Assembly (NCBI RefSeq): GCF_001194135.2
Contig: NC_068981.1
Location: 130,249,249 to 130,313,248 of the forward strand
Reading direction: 5' to 3'
DNA: 64,000 nt
DNA from: Octopus bimaculoides
Lineage: Eukaryota
This document shows, one piece after another, positions 4,151 through 58,270 of this stretch. A program made the position numbers and the translations under genes. Every line of letters starts with the position of its first letter. The first letter of the stretch is position 1. The notes below the pieces were generated by a model, which saw only the letters and a program-made list of their open reading frames with translations, was not told the DNA's origin and did not search any database.

Positions 4151-5386
4151 CAGGGGTTGGACAAAATAATGTAAACACCTAACATCATAGCATCATAATT
4201 TTGAAATATCTATAAAACCATCAGAAGCTTGTTCATTTTTATGTTTTTTGATTTATTATTTGTTGCTTAATATGTTTTGCTAAAATTGCTGTTTCTTTTC
4301 AGATATCATTAGAAAAAGGTAATTAAAATTCATTAAAATGATAGATCTATTAGATGTTCAAAGAGGTCAAATTGTTGGTGATCGTATGGTAATAAAAACA
4401 ACCGATATGTTTGGTGTATCAAGAAGTACTGTCTTGAAAGTAATGACAGCCTTTGAGAAAGAGGGAAAACCTCCTCGTCGAAACAAAACACAAGAAGAAA
4501 ACCAAAACTTTCAGATAGGGACTGTTGGACTCTTACGCAAATTGTTAGAAAAGATCACAAAAGTACAGCTCCCAAAATTACTGTAGAGCTTAATGATCAC
4601 CTCGAGAACCCAGTTTCCACAAAAACTGTTTGCCAGGAGCTGCACAAAGTCAGATTTCACAGGAGGGCTGCAATCAGAAAACCACTACTTTCAAAAGCAA
4701 ACGTTGCAAAGCATTTAGAGTAGAGTAAAAACCTACAGAATTGGTCCCTAGAGCAGTGGAAGAACGTTATTTTCTCGGATGAGTCATCCATTACCTTACT
4801 TCCAACCACGGGTTGAGTATATGTGTGGAGACATATACTTCCAACTTCTTCCAACTAGTAAACATGGAGGAGGATCTGTGATGATCTGGGAGGGCTATGT
4901 CGTGGAAATCCACCAACCTAACGGTTTCCCTTCAGGGCAGAATTAATAGTCAAGACTATTTGAGCATTTTATCTAATCAAATTCATCCTATGGTTGCGGA
5001 ACTGTTTCCGGAAGGAAACGCCATCTTTCAGGATGATAATGTACCAATTCACACAGCTAAAGTTCTTACTGAATAACATGAGGAACATTCTAGTGAAGTT
5101 GAACATCTTGTCTGGCCACCACAGTCCTCAGATCTCAATATTATTGAACATTTATGGTGCATTTTTAGAAAAACAAGTTAGAAGTTAATCTCCTCCACCA
5201 TCATCACCTCAAGAACTGTTTTAGCTGAAAGATGGACAAAAATTCTTTTGGAAACAATTCAAACTTTGTCTAAGTCCATACCTCATAGAATTGAAGCTGT
5301 AATTACTGCCAAAGGCAGTCCTACCCCATATTAAAATAAATTTGTTTGAAATTTTAAGGTGTTTCCATTATTTTGCCCAACCCCTG
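4151..5386 (+). mobile_element. Tc1-family DNA transposon, both ends present, transposase decayed
   Basis: 30-bp TIRs (caggggttggacaaaataatgtaaacacct; 2 mismatches) flanked by TA. Frameshifted transposase motifs VIFSDES, GGGSVMIW, FQDDNVPIHT and WPPQSSDLNIIEHLW (DD34E type). Confidence 0.92.
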
Positions 5387-6648
5387 TATATATATANNNN
5401 NNNNNNNNNNNNNNNNNNNNNNNNNNNNNNNNNNNNNNNNNNNNNNNNNNNNNNNNNNNNNNNNNNNNNNNNNNNNNNNNNNNNNNNNNNNNNNNNNNNN
5501 NNNNNNNNNNNNNNNNNNNNNNNNNNNNNNNNNNNNNNNNNNNNNNNNNNNNNNNNNNNNNNNNNNNNNNNNNNNNNNNNNNNNNNNNNNNNNNNNNNNN
5601 NNNNNNNNNNNNNNNNNNNNNNNNNNNNNNNNNNNNNNNNNNNNNNNNNNNNNNNNNNNNNNNNNNNNNNNNNNNNNNNNNNNNNNNNNNNNNNNNNNNN
5701 NNNNNNNNNNNNNNNNNNNNNNNNNNNNNNNNNNNNNNNNNNNNNNNNNNNNNNNNNNNNNNNNNNNNNNNNNNNNNNNNNNNNNNNNNNNNNNNNNNNN
5801 NNNNNNNNNNNNNNNNNNNNNNNNNNNNNNNNNNNNNNNNNNNNNNNNNNNNNNNNNNNNNNNNNNNNCAGACTGGAGCCTGGTGTTGCCATCTGGTTTC
5901 ACCAGTCCTCAGTCAAATCGTCCAACCCATGCTAGCATGGAAAGCGGACATTAAACGATGATGATGATGCAGTCCATGGAAGCAAGAGAAGTAATGCTTC
6001 CCTTAAAAATTATAGCAAACAAAATTGAAACTATATTACTTATTTTTCATAAGATCATTCCTCTAATGCTCTGTAAAATTAATATAAACTACATGACATC
6101 ATAGGCTTTAGACTTTTGCTGTCGGAATTAGCATTTTTTCCAATAAAAATGCCACAAAGACAATTTTTTTTCCAGTAAGAGCTGATAACATGTAGTTTTA
6201 GATGCTAATAAATACTTATATGCTTAGATTAAGTTTCTGTCAATTTGCAATACCCATGATAGATATAATCTTACGTTGTTATGTAACACTTACATAGGAA
6301 AAGAGAAGCAAGTTGACATTCTGCTTCTATCAGAAAAATGCTGAAAAGATAACACATGCGTAGTTTTCTGCGTTTATTCAACTAATATTTTATACTTTTT
6401 CAAATTACAGAACACCCTTAATATAAAATGTGAATTTCTTTAGTTTAAAAATATAGCTGTATAATATGAACATGTCAATTTGATTCAGATATCCATGTGA
6501 CAGGCAGGTTTCCACAAAGTTTCCATCTATCAAATTCACTCATAAGGCATTGGTCAGTCTGAGGCCATAGCAGAAGACACTTGCCCATTGCTGAAACAGT
6601 ATTTATAGTCATGTTCAAAATATCAGAAAGTATCCAATAGAGATTCAA

Positions 6649-7058
6649 GGCATAGCTGTGTGGTAAGAAGCGTGCTTCCCAACCACATAGTCCCGAGTTC
6701 AGTACCACTGTGTGGCACCTTGGGTAACTGACTTCTACTATAGCCTCAGGCCAACCAAAGCCTTGTGAGTGGATTTGGTAGATGGAAGGTGAAAGAAGCC
6801 CGTCATGTGTGCACGCGTGTGTATATATATATATATATGTTTGTGTGTCTATGTTTGTCCCCCCCATTATCACTTGACAACTGGTGTTGGTATGTTTACA
6901 TCCCCATAACTTAGCAGTTCAGCAAAGAGACGAATAGAAAAAGTACTAGGCTTAAATATAAGTCCTTGGATCGAATTGTTTGACAAAAACACTTCAATAT
7001 TGTGCTCCAGTATGGCCACATCCAAATGACTGAAACAAGTAAAAGAATAAAAGAATAA
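6649..7058 (+). mobile_element. tRNA-derived SINE with internal (TG/TA)n microsatellite (most abundant family)
   Basis: Head gctgtgtggtaagaag...gttcagt(c/a)ccactg, internal microsatellite, tail actgaaacaagtaaaaga. Further copies or fragments at about 462-826, 3940-4150, 12360-12520, 12541-12925, 19185-19466, 19745-20126, 23035-23412, 24205-24420, 29170-29353, 32590-32800, 36311-36605, 37563-37931, 51238-51400, 52968-53130, 55500-55754, 59055-59410 and 61372-61738. Confidence 0.85.
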
Positions 7059-7469: not shown

Positions 7470-10016
7470 CTGTTGTTGTTAATAATAATAATAATGATGA
7501 TGATGATGATAATCATAATAATAATACTAATGATAAATAATAATAATAATAATAATCCTTTCTGCTGTAAGCACAAGGCCTGAATTTGATGGGTGAGGGC
7601 TGGTCAATTACATCGACCCCAGTGTTCGACTGGTACTTATTTTACTGACCTCAAAAGGATGAATGGCAAAGTTGACCTTGGCAGGGTTTGAACTCAGAGT
7701 ATAAAGACAGACAAAATACCACTAAGCATTTTGCCCAGCATGCTAACGATTCTGCCAGCCCACCACCTTAATAATGATAATAATAAAATAATAGTTTCAA
7801 ATTTTGGTACAATGCCAGTAATTTCAAGGGAAAGGTAAGCCAATAACATTGACCCCAGTGTCCAACTCATAATTAATTCATCAACCCAGAAAGGATGAAA
7901 GATGAATTTGAACTCAGAACATAAAGACAGACAAAATGTTAAGCATTTTGCCTGATGTGCTAACGATTCTGCCAGCTTGCCACCTTAATAAAAATAATAA
8001 TAATAATCCTTTCTACTAAAGGCACAAGGCCTGAAATTTGGTGGGAGGGGACTAGTTGATTACATCAACCTCAGTGTTTCACTGGTACTTAATTTATTGA
8101 CCCCGAAAGGATGAAAGGCAAAGTCGACCTCAGTAGAATTTGAACTCAAAATGTAGCAGCAGACGGAATACTGATAAGCATTTCACCCAGCATGCTAACG
8201 ATTCTGCCAACTCACTGCTTTAGTANNNNNNNNNNGATTCTGCCAACTCACTGCTTTAGTAATAATAATAATAATAATAATCATCATCATCATCATCGTC
8301 GTTTAACGTCCACTTTCCATGCTAGCATGGGTTGGACGATTTGACTGAGGACTGACGAACCAGATGGCTGCACCAGGCTCCAAACAATAATAATCCTTTC
8401 TAATATATGCACAAGGCCTGAAATTTGGTGCAGGAAGCCAGTTGAATACATCAACCCTCTCTTTAACTTTTTCTTTATCCTTATTTGTTAATCTACAAAG
8501 GTGAAATACTGACATAAACTTTTAGACAATGCTACCAAGGTCTTTCTTCTCTATAAAGACATCATCCCTGAAGATGTTGCAGTTTCCAATCAACTTTATA
8601 GAGATGAAATTTGAGGTAGGAAAATAGTCAATATTTTGTAAATGTTATATATAATCAAGGATCATCTGAAATTATTCTAACATCAAGACATAAATGATTT
8701 GATCTGATAGTAAAGTTTGATTGTACCAGCCTACTTAAAAAAAAAATCTACATAATAATCTACTTGCTTGTTCACCCGTTATACTTTAGTTAATTAGAGA
8801 AGTAGAGAGAAATTTGAGTAGAGAAGAGTATAACATACTAAGGCCAAATACATCACACGGTTAGTTGAAAGGAGAATTGAAGAGCAAGAAAAAACGACGG
8901 TGAGAGACAAGTGGGAGAGAGAAGTGTTAATGACGGACTGCAGGGCGGGGAGGGAAAGGTGAAGAGAAAGAGAGAAATATTAAAGACATGAAGAGAGGAA
9001 TTACATGGTTAAGAAGTTTGTGGAAGGGATAGAGAGAAAGAGAGAAATGTAAAGTGCTTAGCTGAGGGAAATTTTAAAACCATATAATATATAATTGTGA
9101 TTAGAAATGAAATAACTCAGCAAAATAAAAATCATCCTTTCTTTCTTAAATAACTTCTCTTAATCTTTTTTGTTGTGGAATTATCACAGGTCCTACTAGT
9201 AAAACATAAATTCATCAAAAACCAGCAGCGATATATGACATAGCTACCACTTCTTCATCATCAACAATACAAGCTTTTCTACTTGTAGAGAATAACTTCT
9301 GCATTAATGAATTTTTTTTTTTAGGCCTATCCAACCGACTTATTCTAAGGCTTTGGTTTACTTTTAACTTACATAGCTTCTGAATGGGTGTATCTGCTGG
9401 GTCTCGGTTTAAAATAACACAGTCAGAAAATGGAGGAAATGATGTGAGGAAATATATAAAAATGAAAGCCATATTTGATGGCACAGGCATATTAAATGCA
9501 CTCCAAGTTCAGTAGCACATATTCAGGATTACTCTATCAAATGTAATGATTATTTATATTGCTTTGAATTAATCATGCAATATCTTATAGGTTTGAGATT
9601 TTCCTAATGTGATTGCTAATTTTCAGGACATTGTAGGGTAAGTGTGAAAAGCTGATTCTGGCTGGTTTGAACATAAAATAGGTAGAATATTTAGACCAGA
9701 TATGCCCAGTTTGAATACTAAAGGGTTAAAACGTAATATAGACCCAACTTTGCATATAGGACCTGAGGTGAGGTTTTGAGACACTTTTGTTGGGGAGAAA
9801 AGTACCATCAAATACTGTAAATTAAAGACGCCAAGATTCATGGCAATAAAAAGGAGATCTTGGAGCAGTATTTATTTTTTAAACTGGAAAATGATAATCC
9901 TATATTGATGATTACAATGTAAGAAACAAAAAATGTCAAGTTAGATGTTTATTTTTCAAATCACAGCTAAAAGAAACAGTATAATATACGAATATGAAGG
10001 ACTTTGAAATATTTAC

Positions 10017-16939: not shown

Positions 16940-17165
16940 CTTTAGTTCCACCTGTAAGTCGAAAAGGTAACAAAGCTCTTATCACACCAAATATCTCAAC
17001 AGTTAAAATAGTGTAGACTTTCCCTGTGTTAGGGTCAGGGCGCAAAAGCTCTAAGATTTTGCCCCTCGATACAATAACTTCCTGCTGTTTAGTTCCAGAG
17101 AAATTACCATGGACAGCTTGAGTTATTCCTGTTGCTCGTTGTAATGTCAAATTGTACAGAAACAT
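16940..17165 (-). CDS. SF3B3: Splicing factor 3B subunit 3, first coding exon (exon extends to 17173 with 8 nt of UTR)
   Basis: MFLYNLTLQRATGITQAVHGNFSGTKQQEVIVSRGKILELLRPDPNTGKVYTILTVEIFGVIRALLPFRLTGGTK is the SF3B3/SAP130 N-terminus. Acceptor ttcag|GCATCACCATG; donor AAAG|gtaagt; 226 coding nt. Confidence 0.98.
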
Positions 17166-20100
17166 GGTGATGCCTGAAGTAAAATGAAAATGGAAAACAT
17201 GAGTATATAGCAGGAAAAAATTTCAGTGTAGATGAAGCAATGATAGGTTAAGGGTAGGATACATTTCTGGCAATACATGCCTATTAAACCCACCAATTGC
17301 TGCTTCAAGATGTGGGAGGTTTGTGAATTGGATATGGGCTAGAATGCAGACTTTAATATTTACGTGGGATAAAAACATAATAGATGAAGACAAAATGGAT
17401 TAGGACATGATGTTGAATTGTCTTTAACTGACCCCTTTCATCAACACAGGCCAATTCTATTTTAACTGTTTTTCTGAAGTGATTCTGACAGAATAACTTG
17501 CTTTAAAGAACATGTATACCTACAGTACAATAAGGGGCAATTACAAAGGGCTACCTCAAGAAACAAAATTTACTAAGTTGATGGCACATTTTCCAGATGT
17601 AAAAGGGAAACATGCTAACCACCTTATACAAGGACAAATGTATATTTCTGTGAGGCTAGTGCTACTGATCATCAACATCATCATTATTTAACACCTATAT
17701 TCCATGCTGGCATGGGTTGGACAGTTTGACAGGATCCAATCTGTTCAAGGATCATATTGAGCTCCTGGTTTTTGTCATCTCTGTCAGGCTTAGGATCCTG
17801 AGGTCAGCATTCACCAGTTCATACCATGACTATCTGGACTTCACCTCTTCCACAACTTACAGCTACATTAAGCAAATGGCACTTCTTTATACAGCTGTCC
17901 TCATCCATATGCATTTCATGTCCATACCACATGTTGATGCTGAAGGTAAGCAAGCCTACTATAAATATTGCATATAATAAACACATGTTATTGATAATCC
18001 AACCAATATCAAGCTTGTTACCTATTTGGAAAGCCTGGAAAGAAATGGTGGGATACATTTCGTAGCTTTTAGCCAATTTAACTATAGTGAATTCTTTTAT
18101 TGCATGCATGAAAAGTTATATGGTACCACTACCACCAAAAGACTACCATCACATGAAATTTTGTGTTGATTTTGCATCTTAGTTACACAGAGGCTACTCT
18201 TCCCAAATGCAAAGGGCTAGAAAAAAAGTAAAATTGACTGATGTGGATATAAACAGAGAATAATGATTTCTGTAAGATTGAGAAAAAAATGATAGGAATG
18301 AAGTGTGTAGAATGTGTTCATTGTAAAAGAGAAAAACTGCTAAAGACTATCAAGTTGAAACCTCTTTTAGAGATTTGTTTTGTGAAGTGCCAATGTGTAA
18401 AATGGGCTTTGGATTAATTTCATGGCAGAAATACAACATGAAAATATTTTATTAAATCTGTAGTTTGAGAGAAATGCAATTATCATATAATTCTTACATT
18501 TGAACACAATGTATGAAAATGGGAGATCTCTATATGTGCCAATCCCTAACTGTGGAGGGAACCAGTAGAAGAGGTAGAGCCAGGAAGACATGGGACGAGG
18601 TGGTGAAGCATGATCTTCGGGTGTTGGATCTCACAGAGGCGATGACAAGTGATTGAGACTTTTGGCAATTTGCTGTGCTTGAGAAGACTTGTCAAGCCAA
18701 GTGAGATCGTAGTCATGGCCAGTGCCAGTGACATGTAAAAAGGCACTCACTACACTCTTGCAGTAGGAAGGGCGTCCAGCTGTAGAAACCAAGCCAAATC
18801 AGACTGGAGCTTAGTGCAGTTCCAGTCAAACCATCTAACTCATGCCAGCATGGAAAACAGATGCTAATTGATATTAACTTTCATTATGTACACACCTATA
18901 CTAATTCATGTTTCCTGTTAATAAGCTTTTTTATTGGACACAGTTTACTAAGTAAATTATCTGAGTAGACTACCATTAGTATATTGACTAATAAAAGAGT
19001 TTTGTACTTTCTTTTAAATGGAAATGTTTGAATGAAATATAGAGAAAGAATGAAATTTTGTATTGATTATACCTACTCTCAAGATGAGACAAAATTGCTG
19101 GAGGTCAACATTTGGGTCGTTGTTGGGTAATTTTAATAACAAAACGAAACATGTACGAGAGATAAAGATTCAATTTTATTGTTTACTCTTTTACTTGTTT
19201 CAGCCATTTGACTGCGGCCATGCCTTTAGTCGAGCAAATCAACCCCAGGACTTATTCTTTGGAAGCGTAGTACTTATTCTATCGGTCTCTTTTGCTGAAC
19301 CGCTAAGTTACAGGGACGTAAACACACCACCATCGGTTGTCAAGCGATGCTGGGGGGACAAACACAGACACACAAACATACACACTTGCCCAAGGTGCCA
19401 CACAGTGGGAATGAACCCGGAACCATGTGGTTGGTAAGCAAGCTACTTACCACACAGCCACTCCTGTTCGTTCATAAAGTCATTGCTTTTACACCTATTA
19501 ACTAATTTCACCTGTTCATATAAAGCAAATTTAACAAAAAAAAAAACATCAGGTAAAAATACATAACCATAAATCACTGGTATTTAAACACCTACGCACA
19601 AAATATCAAGTCTGTATGTAACAAAATTAACAAGGTTACAAGCAATTATTGTTGATCCCTGTTTTGAGTATGATTAACACAAAATAGTGTGAATAAGCAT
19701 TATGCTTGACAGAGTAAGCTAAATGCTCAAGGGTTAAAAGTATCTTTTATCTTTTACTCATTTCAGTCATTAGACTGTGGCCATGCTGGGGCACCACCTT
19801 AAAGAATTTTAAGTCAAATGTATTGACCCCAGTACTTATCTTTTTCAAGCCTAGTACTTTGATACATATTTTATCAGTCTCTTTCACTAAACAACTAAGT
19901 TATGGGACATAAGCATACCGACACTGGTTGTCAAGTGGTGGCAGTCAGACACACACACATATATATAATACAATGGGATTCTTTCAATTTTTGTCTACCA
20001 TATCCACTCACAAGACTTTGGTTGGCCCAGGGCTGTAGATGACACTTGCCTAAGGTTCCACGCAGTGGGACAGAACCTGGAACCATGTGGCTGGAAATTC

Positions 20101-20238
20101 AAGGCTTCTTACCATACAGCCATGCCTCAATATATAAAGGTTTTTTGATACACATCTAAGTTGCATATTTTTGAGTTAACAGACAATCCTCACTTAAGAA
20201 TACTCTTTAGTCTATCAACTGATGAACAAATAAATGCA

Positions 20239-20794: not shown

Positions 20795-21455
20795 GAAGGT
20801 GGCGAGCTGGCAGAATCGTTAGCATGCTGGGCGAAATGCTTAGCGGTATTTCATCTGCCGCTATATTCTGAGTTCAAATTCTGCTGAGGTCGACTTTGCC
20901 TTTCATCCTTTCGGGGTCGATAAATTAAGTACCAGTTACGCACTGGGGTCGATGTGATCGACTTAATCCCTTTGTTTGTCCTTGTTTGTCCCCTCTATGT
21001 TTAGCCCCTTGTGGGCAATAAAGAAATAAGAAACATTAGCACTCCGGGCAAAATGCTTATTGATATTTCATGTCTTTACGTTCTGAGTTCAAATTCCGCC
21101 AAGATTGACTTTGCCTTTCATCCTTTTGGGGTTGATAAATTAAGTAACAGTTGCATGCTGGGGTCAATCTAATTGACTGCCCCCTCCCCCAAAATTTCGG
21201 GCCTTGTGCCTGGAGTAGAAAAGAACATTACTGTATAAGGCAGTGAGCTGGCAGAATCGTTAGCACACTAGGCAAAATGCTTAACAGCTTTTCATCCATC
21301 TTTACATTCTGAGTTCAAATTTTGCTGAGGTCAACTTTGCCTTTCATCCTTCCAGGGTGAATAAAATAAGTACCAGTTGAGGACTGGGGGTTGATGTAAT
21401 CAACTTATCCCTTTTCCCAAACTCACTGGCCTTGAGCCAAGATTTGAAACCAATA
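20795..21455 (+). mobile_element. Three tandem copies of a tRNA-derived SINE with a Nin-like central domain
   Basis: Head ggcgagctggcagaatcgttagc...gagttcaaattc; central gactttgcctttcatcctttcggggtcgataaa..agtaccag; flanked by attact at both ends. Other copies at about 7555-8225 (three, minus), 11505-11700, 27195-27725, 33225-33430, 38130-38345, 46345-46560, 56385-56600 and 62930-63075. Confidence 0.8.
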
Positions 21456-26780: not shown

Positions 26781-29700
26781 AATGCATCATTCCTTTTGAA
26801 TGCATTTGGATTTCCATGCAAATCCTTATTAAACTAATTTAAGTCGTCGATTTCAATTCAGAAATAACCAGGAACTAATATAAAGTACAACTCCAAATAA
26901 AATTCAATTATAAACTGAAAACTGGAGCTAGTTGTTTAGCTTCCAGTTAGCTTTCTTTGAATAGACCTATATTCTAAGTCGCTCCAGTCATGTCCCGCCT
27001 GTCTTTTCAGATGTAGCTAGCAAAACTTTATTCAGTCTCTTTCCCTTTTCATAATGTGATGAGGGAGATTTGGCTGCTCTTTCTAACAGATCGAGTGACT
27101 TTATAGAGGCTGCGTAAAAAGTTTAAATTTTGATGAAACACAAAACATGGCACTGATATTAGGACATTAATTAAATATTACCCAAAGAAATTATATTGGT
27201 TTCAAATTTTGGCACAATCCCAGCAATTTCGGGGGAGGAGGTAAATCGATTACATTGACCGCCGTGCTCAACTAGTACTTATTTTATCGATCCCGAAGGC
27301 TTGAAAGGCAAAGTCGACCTCAGCGGAATTTGAACTCAGAAAGTAAAGTCGGACGAAATACCGCAAAGCACTTTGCCCAACGTGCTTACGATCCTGTCTG
27401 CTTGCCGCTTTAATCGTAAGAAATTATATTGGCTTCAAATTTCGATACAAAGCCAGCACTTTGCTCAGCGTGTTTACGATCCTGTCTGCTTGCCGCTTTA
27501 ATCGTAAGGAATTATTTTATATTGGCTTCAAATTTCGATACAAAGCCAGCAGTTTCGTGGAAGGGGTATAGTTGCTTACATCGACCTCAGTGTTTCATTG
27601 CTACTTATTTTATCGACCCAAAATAACATGAAAGACAAAGTTGGCCTCGGCGGAATTCGAACTCGGAACGTAAAGTTGGACGAAATGCCGGCGTGCTATC
27701 GATTCTGCCAGCTCGTTGCTTTGTCCCAAGAAATTGTTTTAAAAAACAAAAGCAAATTAATGCAGTCCTCAATGTTATTACAAGAGAATATTGCTAGGAA
27801 TGAGTAAGTTAAATGTTTATTTACACTAGTGTCCAAAGAAGTATTTTGAGTAAAAGGTTTTCTTTGTGACATTGAGTTCTTGCTAGCTCTTTGAAATATC
27901 TCATGCTATCTTCTATAGTATTGTGTGACACAATTCTTGGAAGTGTTATAAGGCAGGACTCAGAGAACAATGTATAGAACCAAAATGTAAACAGTGCATT
28001 TATTCACTTGTATAATATATGTCATTTACTCCCTATTCTTCTGAAGGCTTGATTATGGAAATATTTGAGAATGTTTGACAAAGTTTCCTCAACTTTGAAC
28101 TTGAATGTCATATAAGATGTCTCATAGAATAATTGAACCCTTTTGCTACCATATTTCTCTTGGAATGCACCACCTTTGTTTCAATTAATTTTGAAAATAA
28201 TGAAGAATTTAATAAAATACATTTGTCATTATTAAACTGATTTTTGGAACATGAATTAACATGAAATGTTATGAGAAATTTTAATTTAAATCATTTTTAA
28301 ACAGGAAGTTGCTATCAAGCAGGTGATTTGCTATGGGAAGACTTAAGGTAGTGAGTGATATGTTGCTGGTTGTTTATTAAGCTCTGGCCTTAATATGCCT
28401 GACACTTGCCCAAGGTGCCACACAGTGTGACTAAACTTGCAAACATACTTAGGGAAGCAAACGTCTTAACCACACAGCCTTAAATATCATCATCATCATC
28501 ATCATTTAACTTCTGCTTTATATGCTGGCATGAGTTAGACGGTTTGAATGAAACTGGTAAGCTATGGGGCTACACTAGGTTTCAATCTAATTTGGCATGG
28601 TTTCTATGGCTGGATGCCCTTCCTAACGCCAACCACTCCAAGAATGTAACAAGTGCATTTTACATGACACCGGCATCGGCCATGACTACAATTTCACTTG
28701 GCTTGACGGGTCTTCTCAAGCGCAGCATATTGCCAAAGGTTTGGTCACTTATTGCCTCCATGAGGCCCAATGTTTGAAGGGTGCTTAAAACATCCCAGTT
28801 ACATGACACTGGCATCAGCCATGATTATAATTTCACTTGGGTTGATGGGTCTTCTCAAGCATGGCATATCGCCAAAGGTCTCAGTAACTTGTCATCGCCT
28901 TCATGTGTTTGTGTGGTCTCGGTAACATGTCATCGCCTTCTTGTGTTCAAATGAAGATCATGCGTCACCACTTTGTCCCATGACTTCCTGAGTCTACACC
29001 TTCCACAGGTTCCCTCCATGGTTAGAGATCAGTACTTATGTGAGTGTGTGTAAACTAATACATCTGTTTGTTGTTTACACACTCATCTTCGTCTTTTGTT
29101 TTTTTTTTGTAAATTCTCACTATATATATTGCCATCTAAGAATACACAAGTCAGGAAAAAATGCAAATGTATATACATATACAGTCGGAGGCAAGGATGT
29201 TTAGTAAGAAGTTTGCTTCCCAACCATATAGTTCCAGGTCCAGTTCCATTAGGTGGCACCTTGGACTTCTGCCATAGCCTTAGGCCAACTAAGGCCTTGT
29301 AAGTGTATTTGGTTGATGGAAATATACATCATATGTATGTGTGTGTGTGTATANNNNNNNNNNNNNNNNNNNNNNNNNNNNNNNNNNNNNNNNNNNNNNN
29401 NNNNNNNNNNNNNNNNNNNNNNNNNNNNNNNNNNNNNNNNNNNNNNNNNNNNNNNNNNNNNNNNNNNNNNNNNNNNNNNNNNNNNNNNNNNNNNNNNNNN
29501 NNNNNNNNNNNNNNNNNNNNNNNNNNNNNNNNNNNNNNNNNNNNNNNNNNNNNNNNNNNNNNNNNNNNNNNNNNNNNNNNNNNNNNNNNNNNNNNNNNNN
29601 NNNNNNNNNNNNNNNNNNNNNNNNNNNNNNNNNNNNNNNNNNNNNNNNNNNNNNNNNNNNNNNNNNNNNNNNNNNNNNNNNNNNNNNNNNNNNNNNNNNN

Positions 29701-29814
29701 NNNNNNNNNNNNNNNNNNNNNNNNNNNNNNNNNNNNNNNNNNNNNNNNNNNNNNNNNNNNNNNNNNNNNNNNNNNNNNNNNNNNNNNNNNNNNNNNNNNN
29801 NNNNNNNNNNNNNN

Positions 29815-30757
29815 AGCCAGGCCCTGGAAGACCTGTAGAGCTCAACAAGAATGTCCTGCAAATCCTGGTGGAACAAAATCCCATCGTAACTGTTGAGGAA
29901 CTTGCAAAGAAGCTTGGATTTGGTCATTCAACCATTCATCAACACCTGTGCGCCATCAGAAAAGTCAGCAAATTGGGTCAATGGGTTCTTCACAAACTTT
30001 CTGAGTCTAATCACGTGCAGAGAGTAAATGTGTGCTCTTCTTTGCTGTCACATCTCACAAATGAACCTTTTTGGGACCGAATAGTGACTGGTGATGAGAA
30101 ATGGGTTCTCTATAAAAACGTCAAGTGCCCAAGACAGTGGGTAGGTAAAGGAGAAATACCAGCACCCCAGACCAAAGAAGGTCTTCATCCATGTAAGGTG
30201 TTGTTATCTGTTTTGTGGGATATAAAAGGTTTAGTCCACTTTGAACTTTTAAATCCAAACCAAACGATAACAAAGAAGATCTACTGTGAGCAGCTTAAGT
30301 CAGCGCTAAAAGAAAAACGATCATCTTTTGTTTCAAGACAAAAGGTGTTCTTTCATCAGGATAATGTTCAGCCACATACAGCGAGGATGACATTCCAGAG
30401 GCTGGAGTAGTTTGTATGGGAAATGATATTCCACCCATCATATTCGGTGGACATTGCTCCATCATTTATCCTTTATCATTATCATTTATCACTATCATTT
30501 ATTCCACAGTCTTGAAAATCATTTGGATGAAATAAATATGAATTGTGTAGATGAGGTCAAAACAGTACTGGAAGAGTATTTTTTGTCAAGGATAAGTGAA
30601 TTTTGGAAGAGGGGCCTTGCAAGTCTACCAGATATATGGAAGAGCAGTGTAGAAAATGAAGGAGAGTATATTTTAGATTAAAAAAGAACTTTGTTTATCT
30701 TAATTTTGAAAAATAAAAGAAGTATAACAAAACAGCATTATTTATGGGATGACCCAA
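29815..30757 (+). mobile_element. mariner (DD34D) transposon, 5' end in N-gap
   Basis: GRP..., WV(P)HKL-like GQWVLHKL, IVTGDEKWVLY, FHQDNVQPH and HPSYSVDIAPS motifs, with a stop and a small insertion; 3' TIR ...atttatgggatgacccaa followed by TA. Confidence 0.92.
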
Positions 30758-30792
30758 TATATATATGATGATGAATGTATGTATGTATGTAT

Positions 30793-31285
30793 AACTTGTT
30801 TTAAATCTCTCAGCGAGAGACATACAGTAACAATACCTTATCAGTCATTAGATAAGTGCTTCCCCATGGCTAACAGTTGTCCTGACTCTTATTTCTAGCA
30901 ATGCTGGTACTGACTAAAACCGTTAGTCACCTTGGTGATGTCTATACTTGTGGCTTTTGATTGTAAATTGCAAATAAGCCACACTAATAATTTATTATTT
31001 TCCCTTTTACCATTTATGGAATCAACCTCTGATTGCTACGGTATTCTCTATAAACTGACAAGGTAAGTTAGCGTTAACCCTTGGCAACCAGGTGAGAGTC
31101 ACTGATGAGGATTAATCAAATCTGAAATCATCAATGATTTGGCTCTGTCTCGCTCACTGTAGGGAGCTTGTTTCCTTTGTCAGTCATTAGGTAAGTGTTT
31201 CCCCATTGCTAAGAGTTGTTCTGATTCTTATTTCTAGCAATGCTGGTGATACTAGCACCCTTAGTCACCTTAGTGACGTCTATAC
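30793..31285 (+). mobile_element. Retrozyme-like / pLTR-like element (about 1.3 copies of a 339-bp monomer)
   Basis: About 107-bp direct repeats at 30841-30947 and 31180-31285 (offset 338-339) bracket the hammerhead; flanked by (TATG)n on the left and (TACA)n(TA)n on the right. Confidence 0.6.
31096..31145 (+). ncRNA. Type I hammerhead ribozyme in retrozyme-like unit
   Basis: GAGTCA CTGATGA GGATT-AATCA-AATCT GAAA TCAT-CA-ATGA TT TGGCTC: stem I 6 bp, stem II 5 bp, stem III 4-5 bp, AUU triplet. Confidence 0.8.
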
Positions 31286-33663
31286 ATACATACATACATA
31301 CATATATATATATATATCATCGTCATCGTTTAACGTCCGCCTCCTATGCTAACATGGGTTGGACGATTTGACTGAGGACTGGCAAACCAGAAGGCTGCAC
31401 CAGGCTCCAATCTGATTTGGCAGAGTTTCTACAGCTGGATGCCCTTCCTAACGCCAACCACTCCGAGAGTGTAGTGGGTGCTTTTACATGCCACCGGCTT
31501 GAGGGCCAGTCAGATGGTACTGGCAATGGCCACGCTCAAAATGGTGTTTTTTACGTGCCACCTGCACAGGAGCCAGTCCAGCGGCACTGGCAACGACCTT
31601 GCTCAAATGTNNNNNNNNNNNNNNNNNNNNNNNNNNNNNNNNNNNNNNNNNNNNNNNNNNNNNNNNNNNNNNNNNNNNNNNNNNNNNNNNNNNNNNNNNN
31701 NNNNNNNNNNNNNNNNNNNNNNNNNNNNNNNNNNNNNNNNNNNNNNNNNNNNNNNNNNNNNNNNNNNNNNNNNNNNNNNNNNNNNNNNNNNNNNNNNNNN
31801 NNNNNNNNNNNNNNNNNNNNNNNNNNNNNNNNNNNNNNNNNNNNNNNNNNNNNNNNNNNNNNNNNNNNNNNNNNNNNNNNNNNNNNNNNNNNNNNNNNNN
31901 NNNNNNNNNNNNNNNNNNNNNNNNNNNNNNNNNNNNNNNNNNNNNNNNNNNNNNNNNNNNNNNNNNNNNNNNNNNNNNNNNNNNNNNNNNNNNNNNNNNN
32001 NNNNNNNNNNNNNNNNNNNNNNNNNNNNNNNNNNNNNNNNNNNNNNNNNNNNNNNNNNNNNNNNNNNNNNNNNNNNNNNNNNNNNNNNNNNNNNNNNNNN
32101 NNNNNNNNNNNNNNNNNNNNNNNNNNNNNNNNNNNNNNNNNNNNNNNNNNNNNNNNNNNNNNNNNNNNNNNNNNNNNNNNNNNNNNNNNNNNNNNNNNNN
32201 NNNNNNNNNNNNNNNNNNNNNNNNNNNNNNNNNNNNNNNNNNNNNNNNNNNNNNNNNNNNNNNNNNNNNNNNNNNNNNNNNNNNNNNNNNNNNNNNNNNN
32301 NNNNNNNNNNNNNNNNNNNNNNNNNNNNNNNNNNNNNNNNNNNNNNNNNNNNNNNNNNNNNNNNNNNNNNNNNNNNNNNNNNNNNNNNNNNNNNNNNNNN
32401 NNNNNNNNNNATTGTTACTATACTGTCAGTGATATAACTGTGAATAATATAACTTTAATGTTACTTTAGTTTAAAAGATTTAGCAAAAATAAATTACTCA
32501 CCAATATAAATTTGTCTCAGATCATGTTAAAAAATACTACTGGTTTAACAACATATCTCTGGATTAAAGGATATTTCTATACAATAAAAGATGTCTTCAC
32601 ACTATCCCCCTCTCACTCTCTGGGAGAGAGGCACAAGCACATACACAGACATATGCACACACGGCAGTAACAACTGCCTACCAAATTCAATCACAAAGCT
32701 TCGGTCAGCTCGGGGCTATAGCAGAAGACACTTGCCCAAGGTGCCACGCGGTGGGACTGAACCCGAAACCATATAACTGGGAAGCAAGCTTCCTAACCAC
32801 ACTATGATTTTAATAACACACACACACACACACATTATAAAACAATATATATACATAACTAAAACTATACAAATTTTAACCATACCCCATTTGAATTACA
32901 TTTGTTTCCACACAGAATATCCTTCAATTGAAAACTCATACTATAATTTGGACCAATTCTGTGTCCAAGACATTCAAAATAATTTAGTACTGCTAACATT
33001 TGAAAGAGTGTGTACATGTAATATTCTCATGCTAGAAAGAATAACAAAGCAGAAAAACAAAATACTGTGCTCCAAGTTGCTAAATAACAATTATTTCCAT
33101 GTCAAAGGAAAGGCATGAAAAATTATTTTAGGTTACATGTCAAAGATAAATGAGTTCTAATTTCTCTGGGAGTCAATGTACTGTTATGATATTCCTTCAT
33201 GTTGCCACACACATTTCTTCAGATATTGGTTTCAAATTTTGGTACAAAGCCAGCAATTTTGAGGGAAGGGGTTAGTCAATTACATCATCCCTAGTGTTCA
33301 ACTGGTACTTATTTTATTGAGCCCCAAAATGATGAAAGGCAAAGTTGACCTTGCCAGAATTGAACTCAAAACATAAAGACATGTTGCTAAGTATTTTGCC
33401 CAGCATGCTAATGATCTGCCAGCTTGCTACATTACATATTCTTCAGATATTAGAAACTAATAACATAACTAGACAACTTTTGTTGGTATAACTCTCAATT
33501 AATAATAGATGATACAAAGGAACAATTAAATGAGCAATTTGTTAAACTATGATGCACTTTAGAATGTGGATAAGCCATTCTATAGTGTATAACACTATAC
33601 AATAATGGGACAAGATTCATGATGGACATTTTTCACAAAGTTCCTTTTCAGTACTATTTAGGT

Positions 33664-35025: not shown

Positions 35026-38000
35026 GTTAGTAAAATAACCCTGTTTGCATCCATATCTATGTTTGCTTTGATATATGCCAGACTACATATAATATATAAG
35101 AACAATTGACAATTAGGTGACTCGATAATTGAATACAGTGCACATGTAAAAATTACCTTAGCAACATATATGACTTACCTGTATTTGTTAGTTGACGAGA
35201 TCGTGAACATTTCTGTCATTAGTATGTAGTGTATGTTTAATATTGGATTAATCGGTTGTCAGTTGACGAGTTGTACATTTAATTTCCACTAGTGTTTTAC
35301 TCGTACACTTGTGTATACATAAACACTGACATAATTTATTGAAAGTCTCGTCACCAGCTATCTTTGCTTTGTTTAAACCAAAATAATACACCTCACGTTA
35401 CTATTTTACACGCCAATGTGTAATGCAACTTACATAAATTCAAATACAAAAGTATTAAAGTTTGAAGAATTGTTTGTTTACATCATTATGACCAGTAATG
35501 ATGTATAGTTACAGTAATAAACCACTCGATTTCAACCAAGACAGAAGTAGTTTTAACCTCAACATACATTTATAGATGATATCTTTATAAATATATAAAC
35601 AAATAGTTTCAGATATTGTTAAAGATTGCACCTATTTCATTAGTTCTATTTATACTTTTAATCATTTTTTTCACGGTCAATTTACCTCTCACCTTTGTCA
35701 AGCTTTTCTTCTTTATTATTATTAATTTTTTTTATTAATGTTTCTTTCCCTATACATAACACCGGATATTACAAACCTCCGATTTATTTTCTGTGCAATA
35801 TAATTAAATGTTTATGATCAATAAATATTTTTTTGCTGAACAGTATCAAAATCTTCCAGAATATGTTTATTAAGAGTAATTATCCCGTGTCATTCCTCGA
35901 TAATCTGTCTTTAACGAAGGATGTTCGGACGTAACACGTTTATCATGGTCAATTTTATCATTTTGTTTTATATACTACTGGTACTTTAATTAACCTGGAA
36001 AGACGAGAAAACTTTAATAGGACTCCATCATAAGAGCCGTTGTCTGTTTTATTCCTACCATGTCTTCAATTAACCCATTAATGCATAGTGTCTCGAAAAC
36101 GGGACAAACAGAACATTAATACGAAGTATTTATTTCAGTTATCTGCTGTTCACACATTAACATTTCACAAATCAAAAATACTGTATAATCATCTTTTTAT
36201 AACTTAAAACAAAAAAAAAAAATTCATATGATTTCCTTGTTACTTATTTGTAATTGTAGAATGAAAATGAAATGTTATGGACTGTTGGGTTATTATCTAT
36301 CATTTATGTTGTACTTGTTTCAGTCGTTGGACAAATCGATCCCGGTACTCATTTTTAAAAAAGTCTGGTACTTATTCTATGTCTTTTATGCCGAACCGCT
36401 AAGTTACGGGGATGTAAACAAACCAAAAATAGGTGTCAAGCAGTGAACACACACACACACACACATATACGATGGGCTTCCACACAATTTTTCCGTTCAC
36501 CAAATTCACTTACAAGGCATTAGTTGGCCCAGGGCTGTAGTAGAAGACACTTGTGCAAGCTGCCCTGCAGTGGGGCTGAATCCGAGCTTCTTAACCACAC
36601 AGCTGTAGCCACACCTATTAGTTAAAACAAGCTGAATTAAAGTCAGTCGTATTGCTATTAAGTTTCTTTACTTACCAAATGTATTTAGTTTGTCTATATA
36701 GATTGTTTTTTCTGTCTGGTTTTAATGATGTTACCATCAGGGAGCGGGGTGGAGGTATTGAACTTTTTAAACCTCCTTCCTAATAGATCTGACTCGTATA
36801 TGATATAAAAATAATTATGTGACTGATGGGCCATAGTTAGTTGGGCAGATCTGCCTATCAAGACAGGCAGACTTGTCTACCACAGAAAATACATCTCTGC
36901 CATCCCAGACAGATCTGACTTCTTTCTGAAGCAGATCTGTCATGCTTGAAAGAACTTATTCAATCGTAATATTGTTGTTACAACAACTATAACTAGCTAT
37001 CTGTGCTCAGTTCAACTGACATTGTGATCTGGCACTCACTCTGTTGCTTGCGACAACAAGGGCTCCAGTTGATCCGATCAATGAAACAGCCTGCTTATGA
37101 AATTAACGTGCAAGTGGCCTTGAACTTCACAGATATGTTTGCTGTTGACATAGTTCTCAGGGAGATTCAGCGTGACACAGTATATAATACAAGTACTACT
37201 CGTATTTGCCAGCTGAGTGGACTACTGGAGCAACATGAAATAAAGCATCTTACTCAAGGACACAATGTGCCACTCAGAATTGAACACATGGCCTTATGAT
37301 TATGAGGTGAATGCCCCTAACCACTAAGGCATGTGCCTTCACAACATTAAGATCAGCAATAGGTAATAGGATAGGTACATCAACATCATGACATTCACAT
37401 GCTAGCATTGCATGTTTCACATAATTTATTTGCTTACCATATCAACCCAATGGTCAAGTTTTCTGTGCTATTTAGCAGAAGATTTTTGGAGGTAAAGGAC
37501 CATTTATAACTATAGCCTTGTTTTAAATAAATACCTGACAGTCAACCTAATGGTTTCAGGATCATTCCATTGTGCAGCATCTTAGACAAATGTCTTCTAC
37601 TCTAGCTCCAGGTTGACCAATACCTTGTAGATGAATTTGGTCGATGGAAACTGTTCGAAGCTCATCATACATACATACAGACAAGTCATTCATACATATA
37701 TAGATATGTTTATATGTATGTTTTGTGTTTGTTCCTCCCACAACCATCACGTGACAACTGCTGTTCATTTGCTTTAGATCTCCCTAACTTAGTGGTTCAA
37801 CAAAAGAGGACAATAGAATGAGTACCAGACTTAAAAAATAATTACTGGGGGTTGATTTGTTTGACTAAACACTTCCAAGACAATGCCCCAGCATGTCCAC
37901 AGTCCAATGACTGAAACGAGTAAAAGATAAAAGATACATTAAATGACTGCAAAGTAGCTTATGCCAGTGCAAAGGACTTACTGTGTCAGTTGGAAAATTT

Positions 38001-38349: not shown

Positions 38350-40012
38350 CATCATCATCATCATTTAGCATCCTTTGTCCATGTTGGTATGGGTTGGACG
38401 GTTTAACAGGGCTGGAAGGCTGTACCAGACTCCAGTCTGATTTGGCATGGTTTCTACGGTTGGATACCCTTCCTAACACCAACCACTCCGAGAGTGTAAT
38501 GGCATGGGTGTCATTTGCATGACACTGGTATCTGCCATGGCTGTGATTTTACTTGGCTTGATGGGTCTTCTTCTCAAGCACGACATGATGCCAAAGGTCT
38601 TGGTCATTGCCTCCATGAGGACCAACACTTGAAAGGAGCTCAGCCACTTTACATCCATGAGGTCCAACATTCGTGCCAGTTATGTGACACCAGTATCAAC
38701 CATGACAATGATTTCACTTGGCTTGACGGGTCTTCTCAAGCACAGCATATCAGCAAAGGTCTCGGTCACTAGTCATTGCTTCTGTGAGGCCCAAAGTTCA
38801 AAGATCCTGCTTCACCACCTTGTCCCATGTCTTCCTGGATCTACCTCTACCACAGGTTCCCTCCACAGTTAGAGATCAGCACTTCTTTACACAGCTGTCC
38901 TCGTCCATCCACATCACATGACCATACCATTGCATTCGTCTCTCTTACACACTATCTGATGCCTCTTATGCCCAATTTTTCTCTCAAGATGCTTACACTT
39001 TGTCGAACATGTACACTGACATTGCACGTCCAGCGAAGCATACTGGCTTCATTTCTTTCAAGCCTACGCATGTCCTCGGCTGTTACAGCCCAAGTTTCAC
39101 TGCTGTGCATACAGCATAGCTGTTTACATACAGGTATCATACAATCTGCCTTTCACTCTGAGAGAGGGGCCCTTTGTTGCCAGCGGAAGTAGGAGCTCTC
39201 TGAACTTAGCCCAGCCTAATCTTATTCTCACAGCTATGCTCATGGAACATCCACCTCTGCTACAAACTTAGTCATCTAGATGATGGAAGCTATCTACTAC
39301 CTCTAGCTTACTCCACTGGACTCTATTTTCTGTACATTTTCAGTGTTTATTGTACCTGTGCATCTTTCACACACAAAAGCTATCTTCCCTGTTAACCTTG
39401 ATATTGCTACACCTCTTATGTGTCCAAAGCTTAGACCAGGTGCATCTTATGGAGTTTCTACCTATGCCTTTTCTACAGATCGAGCAGGGCCATTGACCTG
39501 AAGGGATTTGTGATTTGTCTGCCTTTCTACTTAGGAAGACTTTGGTTTGTGCTAGGTTAACTCTAAGGCCCTTTGATTCTAGACCTTGTTTCCATACCTG
39601 GAACTTCTTCTCCAGTTCTGGTAGTGGTTCAGCTATAAGAACAAACACATCAGCATAGAGGAGCTCCCAGGAGCAGCCTGTCTTATATTCCACTGTTATT
39701 GCCTGGACAACTATAATGTACAAGAAGGGGCTGAGTACCAATCCTTGGTGAACCCCTACTTGTACCCTGAATTCTTTACTGTACTTGTTGCCAACCCTCA
39801 CCTTACTGGTAGTGTCCCTATACATGGCTTGTACAGCTCTCCAACCACTTGTCTATCCCTAGTTTCCGCATTGACCACTAGATAAGGGATTAGAGGACCC
39901 TGTCAAAAGCTTTCTCCAAGTCAGCAAAAGACAAGTACAGAAGTTTATCTTTGGCTATGTATTTCTCATGCAGCTGCCTTACCAGAAATATAGCACCAGA
40001 GGTGCTTCTCCC
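38350..40012 (-). mobile_element. RTE-clade LINE, 5'-truncated, decayed RT
   Basis: RT motifs FADLEKAFDRV, VGVHQGLVLSPFLY and LLYADV (YADD); C-terminal HSSETWAVTAEDMRRLERNEASMLRW; (GAT)n tail at 38350-38364. Confidence 0.92.
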
Positions 40013-43102: not shown

Positions 43103-43233
43103 GTGAGTTGAAGTGATGTTTATTGTAAACTGAAGATTTTGTCAATGTTTATGATGATGATCATCATTATTTAATGTCTGTTTTCCATGCTAGCATAGTT
43201 GGATGATTTGATATATATATATATATATATATA

Positions 43234-44496
43234 CTAGCAGAGGCACCCGGCATTGCCCGGGAATTAAATTTTTCCTTACATATTGGAAGAAAAAAGCAAA
43301 ATATGTTGTATAGAAATTTGTTATTCTAAATTCAAATTATTCTTTAATTGGGAAATCAATTCTGAATTCATAATACAAAATAATAGTAATAAACGAAAAT
43401 ACAAAATTTTCCACTTTTATGAAAGGAGATAAATTCTACTACATATGTTGAAGGAAATTATGTAAGAGCTTCTGGGTAAACAACATTCTTTGTTTACTGG
43501 TTTGGAGCATAGACAAATAAGTCTTGTAAACTACTACTTATCCTGGAACAACCAACATAAAGTCGACAATGAAAAACGCAAGCAAGTAGATTTCAAAGGC
43601 TGACCTTGAGCTTTATTAATAGACATTGCAAAGCAAAGTTGCACTGGGAATTGTGTTTGTTTAAACTCAAATGGCATATCTGTTGGTTTGATTGGAATTC
43701 TTGGAATGAAAACCTCTTCTCCAGAGACACATCCAGTGATGATGGTAGCTTCTGTCACATTAGGTGATTATGTCTTCACAATCAACCTTGTTCTATTGCA
43801 TAATTTAGGAGGATCTAAATTTCTTAGAAGCATTATTGAGACTCCAACTTTCAGAAAAAGTTTATGTGGTGGAATTCCAGGTGGCTCAAGAGAATTAAGG
43901 AACTCTATTGGGTAATGGACAGCTTGATTTTCATTAAGGACTGAATCAACTGATTTGTACTTCTTAATGACTGTTGGAATCTTATTTATTAATTCATAGG
44001 TAATCCTTGCTACTGTCTCATTTTTTGGAGTAAGAACTGCCCTTTTACACAACCATTTATGTGGATTATAATTATTACATAAGTCTGGCAATACCCTGTT
44101 CTTCAATTCAGCTGGGGAATTCATCATGATAGCAATATGAGCCAAACTGATATCACCATTCCCATCAAATGGTACTTCTCTATTTCCTAGTTTATAACAA
44201 ATTAAAAACAGAACACAAAGGATATCTCGGTACACGTGTTTCAAGCTTTATAAACAATCTGTTATTACATCAGCATAGGTATATTATTGATATAAAAGAG
44301 GGTTTAAAGCTCTCCTCAGCTGCAAACATTGTTAGTCCAAAGATTACATCACAAAAGAAAAAGTACACATAGTATTACCCATTATAATAGGTTTATCACA
44401 TCCCTTTGGAAAGGTATATTTGTATAAAGGTTCATTGGATTTCAAAAATCTGCCCATACTGTATCACTATTCAGCATAGAGTGAATGATAGATAGA
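43234..44496 (-). mobile_element. Helitron, internally deleted, with PIF1-helicase C-terminal remnant
   Basis: Minus-strand peptides YPIEFLNSLEPPGIPPHKLFLKVGVSIMLLRNLDPPKLCNRTRL and IPRIPIKPTDMPFEFKQTQFPVQLCFAMSINKAQGQ; 3' end hairpin cccgggcaatgccggg then CTAG|T at 43234; probable A|TC 5' end at 44496 (less certain). Confidence 0.9.
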
Positions 44497-57724: not shown

Positions 57725-58270
57725 GGAGGCGCAATGGCCCAGTGGTTAGGGCAGCGGACTCGCGGTCATAGGATCACGGTTTCGATTCCCAGACCGGACG
57801 TTGTGAGTGTTTATTGAGCGAAAACACCTAAAGCTCCACGAAGCTCCGGCAGGGAATGGTGGCGAACCCTGCTGTACTCTTCCACCACAACTTTCTCTCA
57901 CTCTTACTTCCTATTTCTGTTGTGCCTGTAATTCAAAGGGTCAGCCTTGTCACACTGTGTCACGCTGAATATCCCCGAGAACTACGTTAAGGGTACACGT
58001 ATCTGNNNNNNNNNNATGGTGGCGAACCCTGTTGTACTCTTCCACCACAACTTTCTCTCACTCTTACTTCCTATTTCTGTTGTGCCTGTAATTCAAAGGG
58101 TCAGCCTTGTCACACTGTGTCACGCTGAATATCCCCGAGAACTACGTTAAGGGTACACGTATCTGTGGAGTACTCAGCCACTTGCACGTTAATTTCACGA
58201 ACAGGCTGTTCCGTTGATCAGATCAACTGGAACCCTCGACGTCGTAAGCGATGGAGTGCCAACAACAACA
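57725..58270 (+). mobile_element. Same tRNA-derived SINE, inserted into an RTE-tail element
   Basis: A/B boxes, (CAA)n tail, 12-bp TSD atgggttagatg (57713-57724 and 58271-58282). The internal 150-bp duplication across the N-gap is probably an assembly artefact. Confidence 0.85.

Follow-up and report, generated by a model that had tools for sequence, protein, structure and literature searches.

A hammerhead-bearing, retrozyme-like partial tandem repeat in the genome of Octopus bimaculoides

A type I hammerhead motif within a partial tandem repeat

In a stretch of 64,000 nucleotides (nt) of the Octopus bimaculoides genome (NCBI RefSeq assembly GCF_001194135.2, contig NC_068981.1, positions 130,249,249 to 130,313,248 of the forward strand), a short non-coding element lies between two microsatellites and carries a single type I hammerhead ribozyme motif. 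We refer to the whole stretch as the window and count positions from its first letter. The element is built around a direct repeat, two copies of which (X1 and X2, ~112 nt each) start 338–339 nt apart and enclose a unique part, Y, that contains the hammerhead. The repeat unit is thus 338–339 nt long, and the tandem portion, 30836–31285, amounts to ~1.33 units. X1 and X2 are 87.4% identical over the 111 aligned columns of a gapped alignment, differing by 9 transitions, 5 transversions and 2 gap columns, and the Kimura two-parameter distance between them is 0.14. The element falls short of two copies, so Tandem Repeats Finder (TRF) does not report the 339-bp period. The unit has a GC content of 38.8%, a value that does not discriminate, the window as a whole being 34.6% GC. 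No open reading frame (ORF) longer than 50 codons occurs in the element, and none of its stop-free segments or pseudo-ORFs has a Pfam match.

These features can be set beside an original prediction for this DNA, which had been made from the letters alone. It had described direct repeats of ~107 bp lying 338–339 bp apart; the spacing was borne out, with a slightly greater repeat length. The lack of an ORF was confirmed as well, and so were the microsatellites at both ends, which TRF recovered and to which we add their mutually inverted orientation. The extent proposed for the element, 30793–31285, holds for the tandem portion and not for the leftmost 42 nt, which align to the unit no better than shuffled sequence does. 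As for the hammerhead itself, the three stems, the CUGAUGA/GAAA core, the AUU triplet and the lengths of helix II (5 bp) and helix III (4 bp, given beforehand as 4–5) all stood, and helix I proved to be 7 bp long, not 6.

Table 1. Features of the element, of its hammerhead motif and of the surrounding sequence. Positions are those of the window; the last column gives the basis of the assignment or a description of the feature. Paired segments of a helix are separated by a slash.
Feature	Position	Strand	Basis or description
Left flank, compound microsatellite (TA)n-GATGATGA-(ATGT)n	30757..30793		TRF (30760-30792, period 4, (TATG)n) and inverted repeat
42-nt leader outside the repeat unit	30794..30835	+	Global alignment, shuffles
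Direct repeat copy X1, start of the complete 338-nt unit	30836..30947	+	87.4% identity to X2
Unique part Y, 226 nt, non-coding, hammerhead near its 3' end	30948..31173	+	Sequence, ORF and Pfam checks
Type I hammerhead motif	31095..31146	+	Descriptor scan and covariance model R1
Helix I	31095..31101 / 31140..31146	+	7 bp, including one U.G at the third pair
Core, CUGAUGA	31102..31108	+
Helix II, GGAUU/AAUCU	31109..31113 / 31119..31123	+	5 bp, with G10.1.U11.1
Loop 2, AAUCA	31114..31118	+
Core, GAA	31124..31126	+	GAAA at 31124..31127
Helix III, AUCA/UGAU	31127..31130 / 31135..31138	+	4 bp, ending in U31138
Loop 3, UCAA	31131..31134	+
H17, U	31139	+
Predicted self-cleavage site, 3' of U17, triplet AUU	31139..31140	+	Hammerhead numbering
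Direct repeat copy X2, partial second unit, last bases TATAC entering (ATAC)n	31174..31285	+	Alignment
Right flank, (ATAC)n(AT)n microsatellite	31282..31317		TRF and inverted repeat
Mariner/Tc1-type transposase remnant	29900..30757	+	Pfam Transposase_1, E 3e-20
SINE-like repeat	31318..32470		Very abundant repeat
LINE-like fragment	39367..39825	-	RVT_1 match
Pif1-like ORF	43768..44244	-	Protein matches in Octopus

The hammerhead is present in a single copy on the + strand and has all invariant core bases, with helices of 7, 5 and 4 bp. The 5' and 3' ends lie in the open helix I, and loops of 5 and 4 nt close helices II and III, respectively. Outside the 7-bp helix I we could find only a 2x2 internal loop and two weak pairs, and contacts between loop 1 and loop 2 are not recognisable; the ribozymes of mussel retrozymes are also without the archetypal loop 1/loop 2 contacts. 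By its sequence, the motif would be cleaved between 31139 and 31140.

We scanned both strands of the window with a hand-written descriptor that asks for CUGANGA and a hairpin for helix II, then for GAAA and a hairpin for helix III whose last base is U, and finally for any base but G at position 17 together with helix I. The motif was the sole match, even with the helix minima set to 3/2/1 bp. First-order Markov sequence matched to the window in dinucleotide content (20 Mb, both strands included) contained helices of at least 5/4/3 bp once, or 0.003 times per 64-kb window, and helices of 7/5/4 bp not at all; the 20 Mb correspond to 312 window-equivalents. We also built a covariance model (R1) from four retrozyme hammerheads with experimental self-cleavage, one each from coral and mussel and two from axolotl (Supplementary Table 2 of PMC7229834), and searched with it with filters off. 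R1 ranked the motif first in the window at 24.9 bits (E 4.7e-5), as a full-length match with no non-standard pair; the next match scored 11.8 bits. An exponential fit to the background matches of R1 gave about the same E-value, by extrapolation. The candidate and the mussel ribozyme have the helix I context GUCA/CUGAUGA...U/UGGC in common, and the U.G at the third pair is found in both mussel and axolotl. At the scale of the window the motif is not a product of chance, and at the scale of the genome a chance origin is unlikely. To judge from its sequence, it resembles the experimentally validated ribozymes of animal retrozymes.

The flanking microsatellites, (ATGT)n on the left and (ACAT)n on the right, are inverted with respect to each other, with 86% complementarity over 37 nt (30757–30793 against 31281–31317). 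The right junction has microhomology: the end of the unit, ...GUCUAUAC, merges into (ATAC)n, and the same bases in X1 precede unit sequence. As for the 42-nt leader at the left junction, its origin may lie in flanking DNA, in a template switch, or in a junction or Penelope-type 'tail'. Its best inverted match, to 31032–31049, is marginal, 27 of 1000 shuffles equalling it, and alignment against shuffles lent no support to the leader as an inverted truncated copy or as a continuation of the unit. No inverted truncated partner of the element was detected.

Related motifs in octopus DNA and the neighbourhood of the element

We fetched nine loci of Octopus sinensis through homologues of the Pif1-like sequence in the window; all nine are paralogous, and none is orthologous to or collinear with the window. 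In these 218 kb, R1 returned six matches of 15–21 bits, where ~0.2 would be expected from the E-values. A clean type I hammerhead at 6851–6893 (-) of locus L004 (CM016859.1) reads, in order, CCAC, CUGAAGA, UUGUC-GAUCAA-GACAA, GAAA, C-AAUU-G, U, A and GUGG; its helices measure 4/5/2 bp and its loop 3 is palindromic. It lies ~110 nt from the end of an element (L004:6745–6893, -) that adjoins (TA)n, and ~700 bp away is an inverted partner (L004:7549–7663, +) that is 93% identical, 5'-truncated inside the ribozyme and likewise ends in (TA)n. This pair is a textbook Penelope-type insertion.

The other O. sinensis motifs vary in completeness. In locus L005, the motif at 16979–17016 (-) has CUGAAGA, a perfect 5-bp helix II and GAAA-UGCA-U-C and is without helix I, and the one at 20142–20184 (+) carries GAAACGCGUC and has an inverted partner at 19891–19977. 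The motif at L007 2957–3002 (+) has a helix I with a distal stem, and that at L001:12320–12362 (-) is hammerhead-like with a broken core. Most of these motifs have a short palindromic helix III, the kind tied to Penelope-like elements. AUCA occurs within loop 2 of the window candidate and of the L007 and L004 motifs. Among all motifs found, the candidate has the top score, and no other motif has a stable 4-bp helix III or lies in a direct partial tandem. Type I hammerhead-like motifs look common in Octopus DNA. In the giant squid, the genome paper lists 235 Rfam Hammerhead_1 loci, and Penelope-like elements have been reported in Octopus and squids; in the literature we found no paper describing retrozymes or hammerheads in Octopus itself.

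Wider searches for relatives of the element were also made. Exact patterns for the ribozyme and for the conserved repeat block gave no hits in two metagenome collections, nor in viral and prokaryote-genome ones, a result that is uninformative, as these collections are without cephalopods. The concatenated stop-free segments of all six frames matched none of 5.8 billion proteins at E<=10, which is uninformative on the existence of a family. A 64% match at 36177–36267, considered as a second copy, was dismissed as AT-rich noise, and microRNA look-alikes in the Rfam scans were sub-threshold.

The immediate neighbours of the element are themselves repeats. Directly to its left is the mariner/Tc1-type transposase remnant, which ends beside (TA)n and whose closest database proteins are 55% identical. 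To its right is a very abundant repeat resembling a short interspersed nuclear element (SINE), whose (CAT)n/(AAT)n terminus precedes GTTTAACGTCCGCTTTCCATGCTAGCATGGGTTGG. The window contains 19 of its copies or fragments, among them those at 2704, 5966, 8291, 15727, 28494, 50929 and 52167. Its internal 67-bp tandem repeats give rise to spurious long ORFs in several frames (31417–32469, 29249–29927 and 5342–5961), and older clusters of SINE-like units in tandem are seen at 20796–21404 and 7583–8225. Within ~5 kb of the element there is no coding remnant of a reverse transcriptase (RT) or GIY-YIG endonuclease; the ORFs in that interval are the mariner remnant and repeat-derived frames. The sole RVT_1 match in the window belongs to the fragment resembling a long interspersed nuclear element (LINE), which lies 8 kb from the element and on the other strand.

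Further features of the window stand apart from the element. The RVT_1 fragment is followed by a cysteine-rich motif, and a copy 79% identical is present in O. sinensis locus L002. The Pif1-like ORF, whose best protein matches are from O. sinensis and O. bimaculoides (72–84% identity), is part of a Helitron-like Pif1 helicase fragment at 43211–44244 (-) with a Pif1_2B domain; paralogues with 85–91% DNA identity occur in eight of the nine O. sinensis loci. None of the mariner, RT and Pif1 ORFs of the window has a protein record of exactly the same sequence. At 57856–58165 there are two tandem 150-nt copies, spaced 160 bp apart, whose 99% identity points to a very recent local duplication. Assembly gaps account for 2,113 N in the window.

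Interpretation of the locus

Our preferred reading, which we hold with moderate confidence, takes the locus for an old and inactive copy of a non-LTR (long terminal repeat) retrozyme-like element of octopus that is small, non-coding and non-autonomous, bears a hammerhead and was mobilised by Penelope-like machinery. It starts from what is observed: the motif, the repeat geometry, the non-coding nature of the unit, the junctions with microsatellites and the hammerhead-bearing Penelope-type insertions in O. sinensis. The element fits the published definition of a retrozyme in its non-coding, low-GC unit of 338 nt, its type I hammerhead with a helix III that would be competent as a monomer, its length of more than one unit and its microsatellite junctions. 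The original prediction had proposed a retrozyme too, and those same features support it in part; the lone hammerhead, the unrelated 42 nt, the silence of Rfam and the mild stability of the circular fold tell against it.

Several of these observations, and others, weigh against a retrozyme origin. There is only one hammerhead in the 1.33 units, and we found no second copy of the element in the window or in the nine O. sinensis loci (217,836 bp, GCA_006345805.1), a sample that excludes only very high copy numbers and is far too small to exclude a family with as many as a few thousand copies. The Rfam hammerhead models were silent, both on the whole window at the gathering score and on segments of 701 nt and 72 nt at E<=10. 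With ~40,000 windows per genome, an E-value of 5e-5 per window still permits a few chance matches. Natural hammerheads seldom have a U at position 17 or the AUU triplet. Because the flanks have an inverted orientation, they offer no readable target-site duplication; direct flanks would be the expected outcome had the element simply inserted into one microsatellite. In global alignment, the leader (30794–30835) scores at the shuffle mean against 31132–31173, showing no homology where a simple rolling-circle product would continue the unit. In its minimum free energy (MFE) fold, the ribozyme region forms a competing hairpin, simple and extended, that pairs CUGAUGA with UCAUCA, at -17.3 kcal/mol versus -8.6 kcal/mol for the hammerhead. 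Finally, the MFE of the circular unit, -77.9 and -81.8 kcal/mol, gives z-scores of -1.6 and -2.45 against dinucleotide shuffles, so that the predicted circle is only mildly stabler than these, with ~60% of it paired.

We considered and rejected the idea that the competing hairpin disqualifies the ribozyme, because the validated coral, mussel and axolotl ribozymes behave alike in the nearest-neighbour model. The fraction of the nearest-neighbour ensemble with all three helices is 1.3e-5 for the candidate, compared with 5e-6 for mussel, 1e-3 for coral and 3e-3 for axolotl. The G.U at pair 10.1/11.1 has a plausible origin in CpG decay, as had been suggested at the outset: the observed/expected ratio of CpG in the window is 0.32, with an excess of TpG (1.28) and CpA (1.31), the element contains 6 CpG against an expected 18, and U11.1-G12 reads TG. 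An active natural ribozyme of axolotl, HHR_Amex2, has a U.U mismatch at this pair, and the candidate's G.U is milder than that.

We infer the transcription, cleavage, circularisation and mobilisation of the element from the published model for non-LTR retrozymes. Tandem source copies would have been transcribed on the + strand, and the type I hammerhead would have cut each unit after the U equivalent to 31139, producing linear RNAs of ~338 nt with 5'-OH and 2',3'-cyclic phosphate ends. A tRNA ligase of the RtcB type could then have closed these RNAs into circles, and an RT/GIY-YIG endonuclease of a Penelope-like element may have copied circular or multimeric RNA into nicked microsatellite DNA, giving an insert longer than one unit. 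Reverse transcription here would have begun where the RNA end ...GUCUAUAC annealed to the (ATAC)n target and run 1.33 units leftwards; the microhomology at the right junction is what priming from a nicked microsatellite on such a template would presumably leave. The two repeat halves may later have diverged by ~7% each. With a single ribozyme in 1.33 units, an RNA from this copy could be cut once and could not release a unit-length product.

The closest alternative is that an autonomous Penelope-like element, heavily 5'-truncated, inserted here as a partial tandem, and that the sequence is its 3'-terminal, hammerhead-bearing part (the pseudo-LTR region), not an independent non-autonomous retrozyme. 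We regard this as possible though doubtful. Most hammerheads in animal genomes are single motifs that are thought, in the literature, to be truncated Penelope copies; the L004 hammerhead lies ~110 nt from a 3' end at (TA)n much as the one here lies 146 nt from an end at (ATAC)n, and the leader could be a Penelope-type tail. However, RT and GIY-YIG remnants are missing from the surrounding ~5 kb, the 338-bp period is far below a Penelope unit of ~3 kb, and the helices of 7/5/4 bp with a non-palindromic loop 3, UCAA, are unlike the minimal Penelope hammerhead. The distinction is partly semantic, since animal retrozymes have been argued to derive from Penelope pseudo-LTRs. A bolder extension of the retrozyme reading, and one we find rather unlikely, would make the locus the relic of a retrozyme family specific to Octopus, with active tandem arrays elsewhere in the genome that yield abundant, ribozyme-processed circular RNAs of ~338 nt in octopus tissues. 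The 4-bp helix III would let its hammerhead work as a monomer, unlike the motifs with short helix III that dominate the Octopus sample.

That the motif is a chance hammerhead-like match in AT-rich DNA, fallen within a local duplication and without ribozyme ancestry, seems improbable to us. The silence of the Rfam models and the simple extended hairpin of the MFE fold would fit such an origin, the window has many short-range direct repeats (10 families), a few matches of this score are expected, by extrapolation, at the scale of the genome, and no homologue was retrieved in which covariation could show. Yet even much weaker motifs arise no more than 0.003 times per window, the 7/5/4-bp form was absent from the 312 window-equivalents, and an independent model places the motif 13 bits above the window background. 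The sequence of helix I and the position of its U.G recur in the mussel and axolotl ribozymes, the motif sits in a unit of retrozyme size and composition, and type I hammerhead-like motifs are frequent in Octopus DNA, and Hammerhead_1 loci have been reported in the giant squid. A miniature LTR-type element, either a terminal-repeat retrotransposon in miniature (TRIM) or something like an LTR retrozyme, would account for the X-Y-X geometry as 112-bp LTRs around a 226-bp internal domain, an arrangement that resembles TRIMs and plant LTR retrozymes, and a possible 4-bp ATAC is found on both sides (30833–30836 and 31282–31285). The right-hand ATAC, however, is simply microsatellite, and the single ribozyme is of type I and internal, whereas LTR retrozymes, which have been described from plants, have type III hammerheads inside their LTRs. 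By eye there are no obvious TG...CA ends, primer binding site or polypurine tract, and the element contains no tRNA-like sequence or tRNA-derived SINE head; we rate this reading as very improbable. Hardly credible is a gene like those for C/D-box small nucleolar RNAs (snoRNAs), with UGAUGA and CUGA boxes and a terminal stem as a K-turn RNA. Weak Rfam matches to many C/D snoRNA families do cover the motif, the best at 18.8 bits, but they arise because the hammerhead core overlaps the box C/D consensus, and none comes near its gathering threshold (39 or more). In addition, a span of 52 nt is too short and CUGA is not beside the terminal stem. Both the LTR-type and the snoRNA readings lack their defining features.

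The retrozyme-like element that we favour is of a known kind, a small hammerhead-bearing retroelement associated with Penelope, in a new host group, the cephalopods, and involves no new biology; the locus itself is a single decayed copy with one ribozyme and no evident function. If a family exists, cephalopods would join cnidarians, bivalves, insects and amphibians as hosts of small circular RNAs processed by ribozymes, and a mollusc lineage with a large, repeat-rich genome would be added to the evidence that retrozymes ride on Penelope-like retrotransposons. For annotation, the Rfam hammerhead models miss well-formed type I motifs in Octopus that a small model of validated retrozymes recovers. 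The unit at 30836–31173 is a ready query for a genome-wide search for the family.

Comparison with retrozymes and Penelope-like elements

Metazoan non-LTR retrozymes are non-coding units of 170–400 nt with low GC (<50%) and type I hammerheads, and those of Mytilus galloprovincialis, which show that retrozymes are already known in molluscs, have units of 350–390 bp (Cervera & de la Pena 2020, PMC7229834). An active retrozyme locus needs at least two consecutive complete ribozymes in head-to-tail units. The octopus element has one, and in the terms of the paper that sets this requirement it would be a 'monomer' derivative. Insertions of the Penelope type can be partial tandems, use microsatellite targets and have extra, non-unit sequence at one end (Craig et al. 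2021, PMC8557442), and the minimal Penelope hammerhead has a helix II of 7–8 bp, a helix I of 4–5 bp and a helix III that is absent or has 1–2 bp with a palindromic loop (Cervera & de la Pena 2014, PMC4209133).

Compared with the amphibian satellite 2 and axolotl retrozymes, the octopus element has a unit of similar length (330–350 bp in amphibians) and the same UCA/CUGAnGA.../UGG context with its U.G wobble. The base of helix II is imperfect in both, with U.U in HHR_Amex2 and G.U here. However, the amphibian ribozymes have a helix III of 1–2 bp, act as dimers and occur in arrays of up to hundreds of units, whereas the octopus motif has 4 bp and is not part of an array.

With Penelope pseudo-LTRs, the element has in common the partial tandem, the insertion at a microsatellite, a 3'-proximal ribozyme and, at one end, additional sequence that is not part of the unit; the L004 insertion of O. 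sinensis is comparable. Through that insertion, co-occurrence with Penelope-type elements is seen within the same genus. Unlike these pseudo-LTRs, the element has no RT/GIY-YIG ORF nearby and no inverted truncated partner, its unit is ten times shorter, and its hammerhead has helices of 7/5/4 bp.

The Mytilus retrozymes differ in other respects. The octopus locus has 1.33 units, one ribozyme, a single known copy and a weakly structured predicted circle, and its motif has G.U at 10.1/11.1 and AUU instead of GUC; we found no similarity to the mussel retrozyme beyond the ribozyme. Like the mussel retrozyme, however, it is a small, AT-rich and non-coding unit (338 nt) that carries a single type I hammerhead, it resides in a mollusc, and its genomic copy is longer than one unit. 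Helix I has GUCA/UGGC with a U.G wobble in both, and both have a stable helix III that would permit action as a monomer. In its 4-bp helix III, the element is closer to the ribozymes of invertebrate retrozymes than to minimal Penelope hammerheads.

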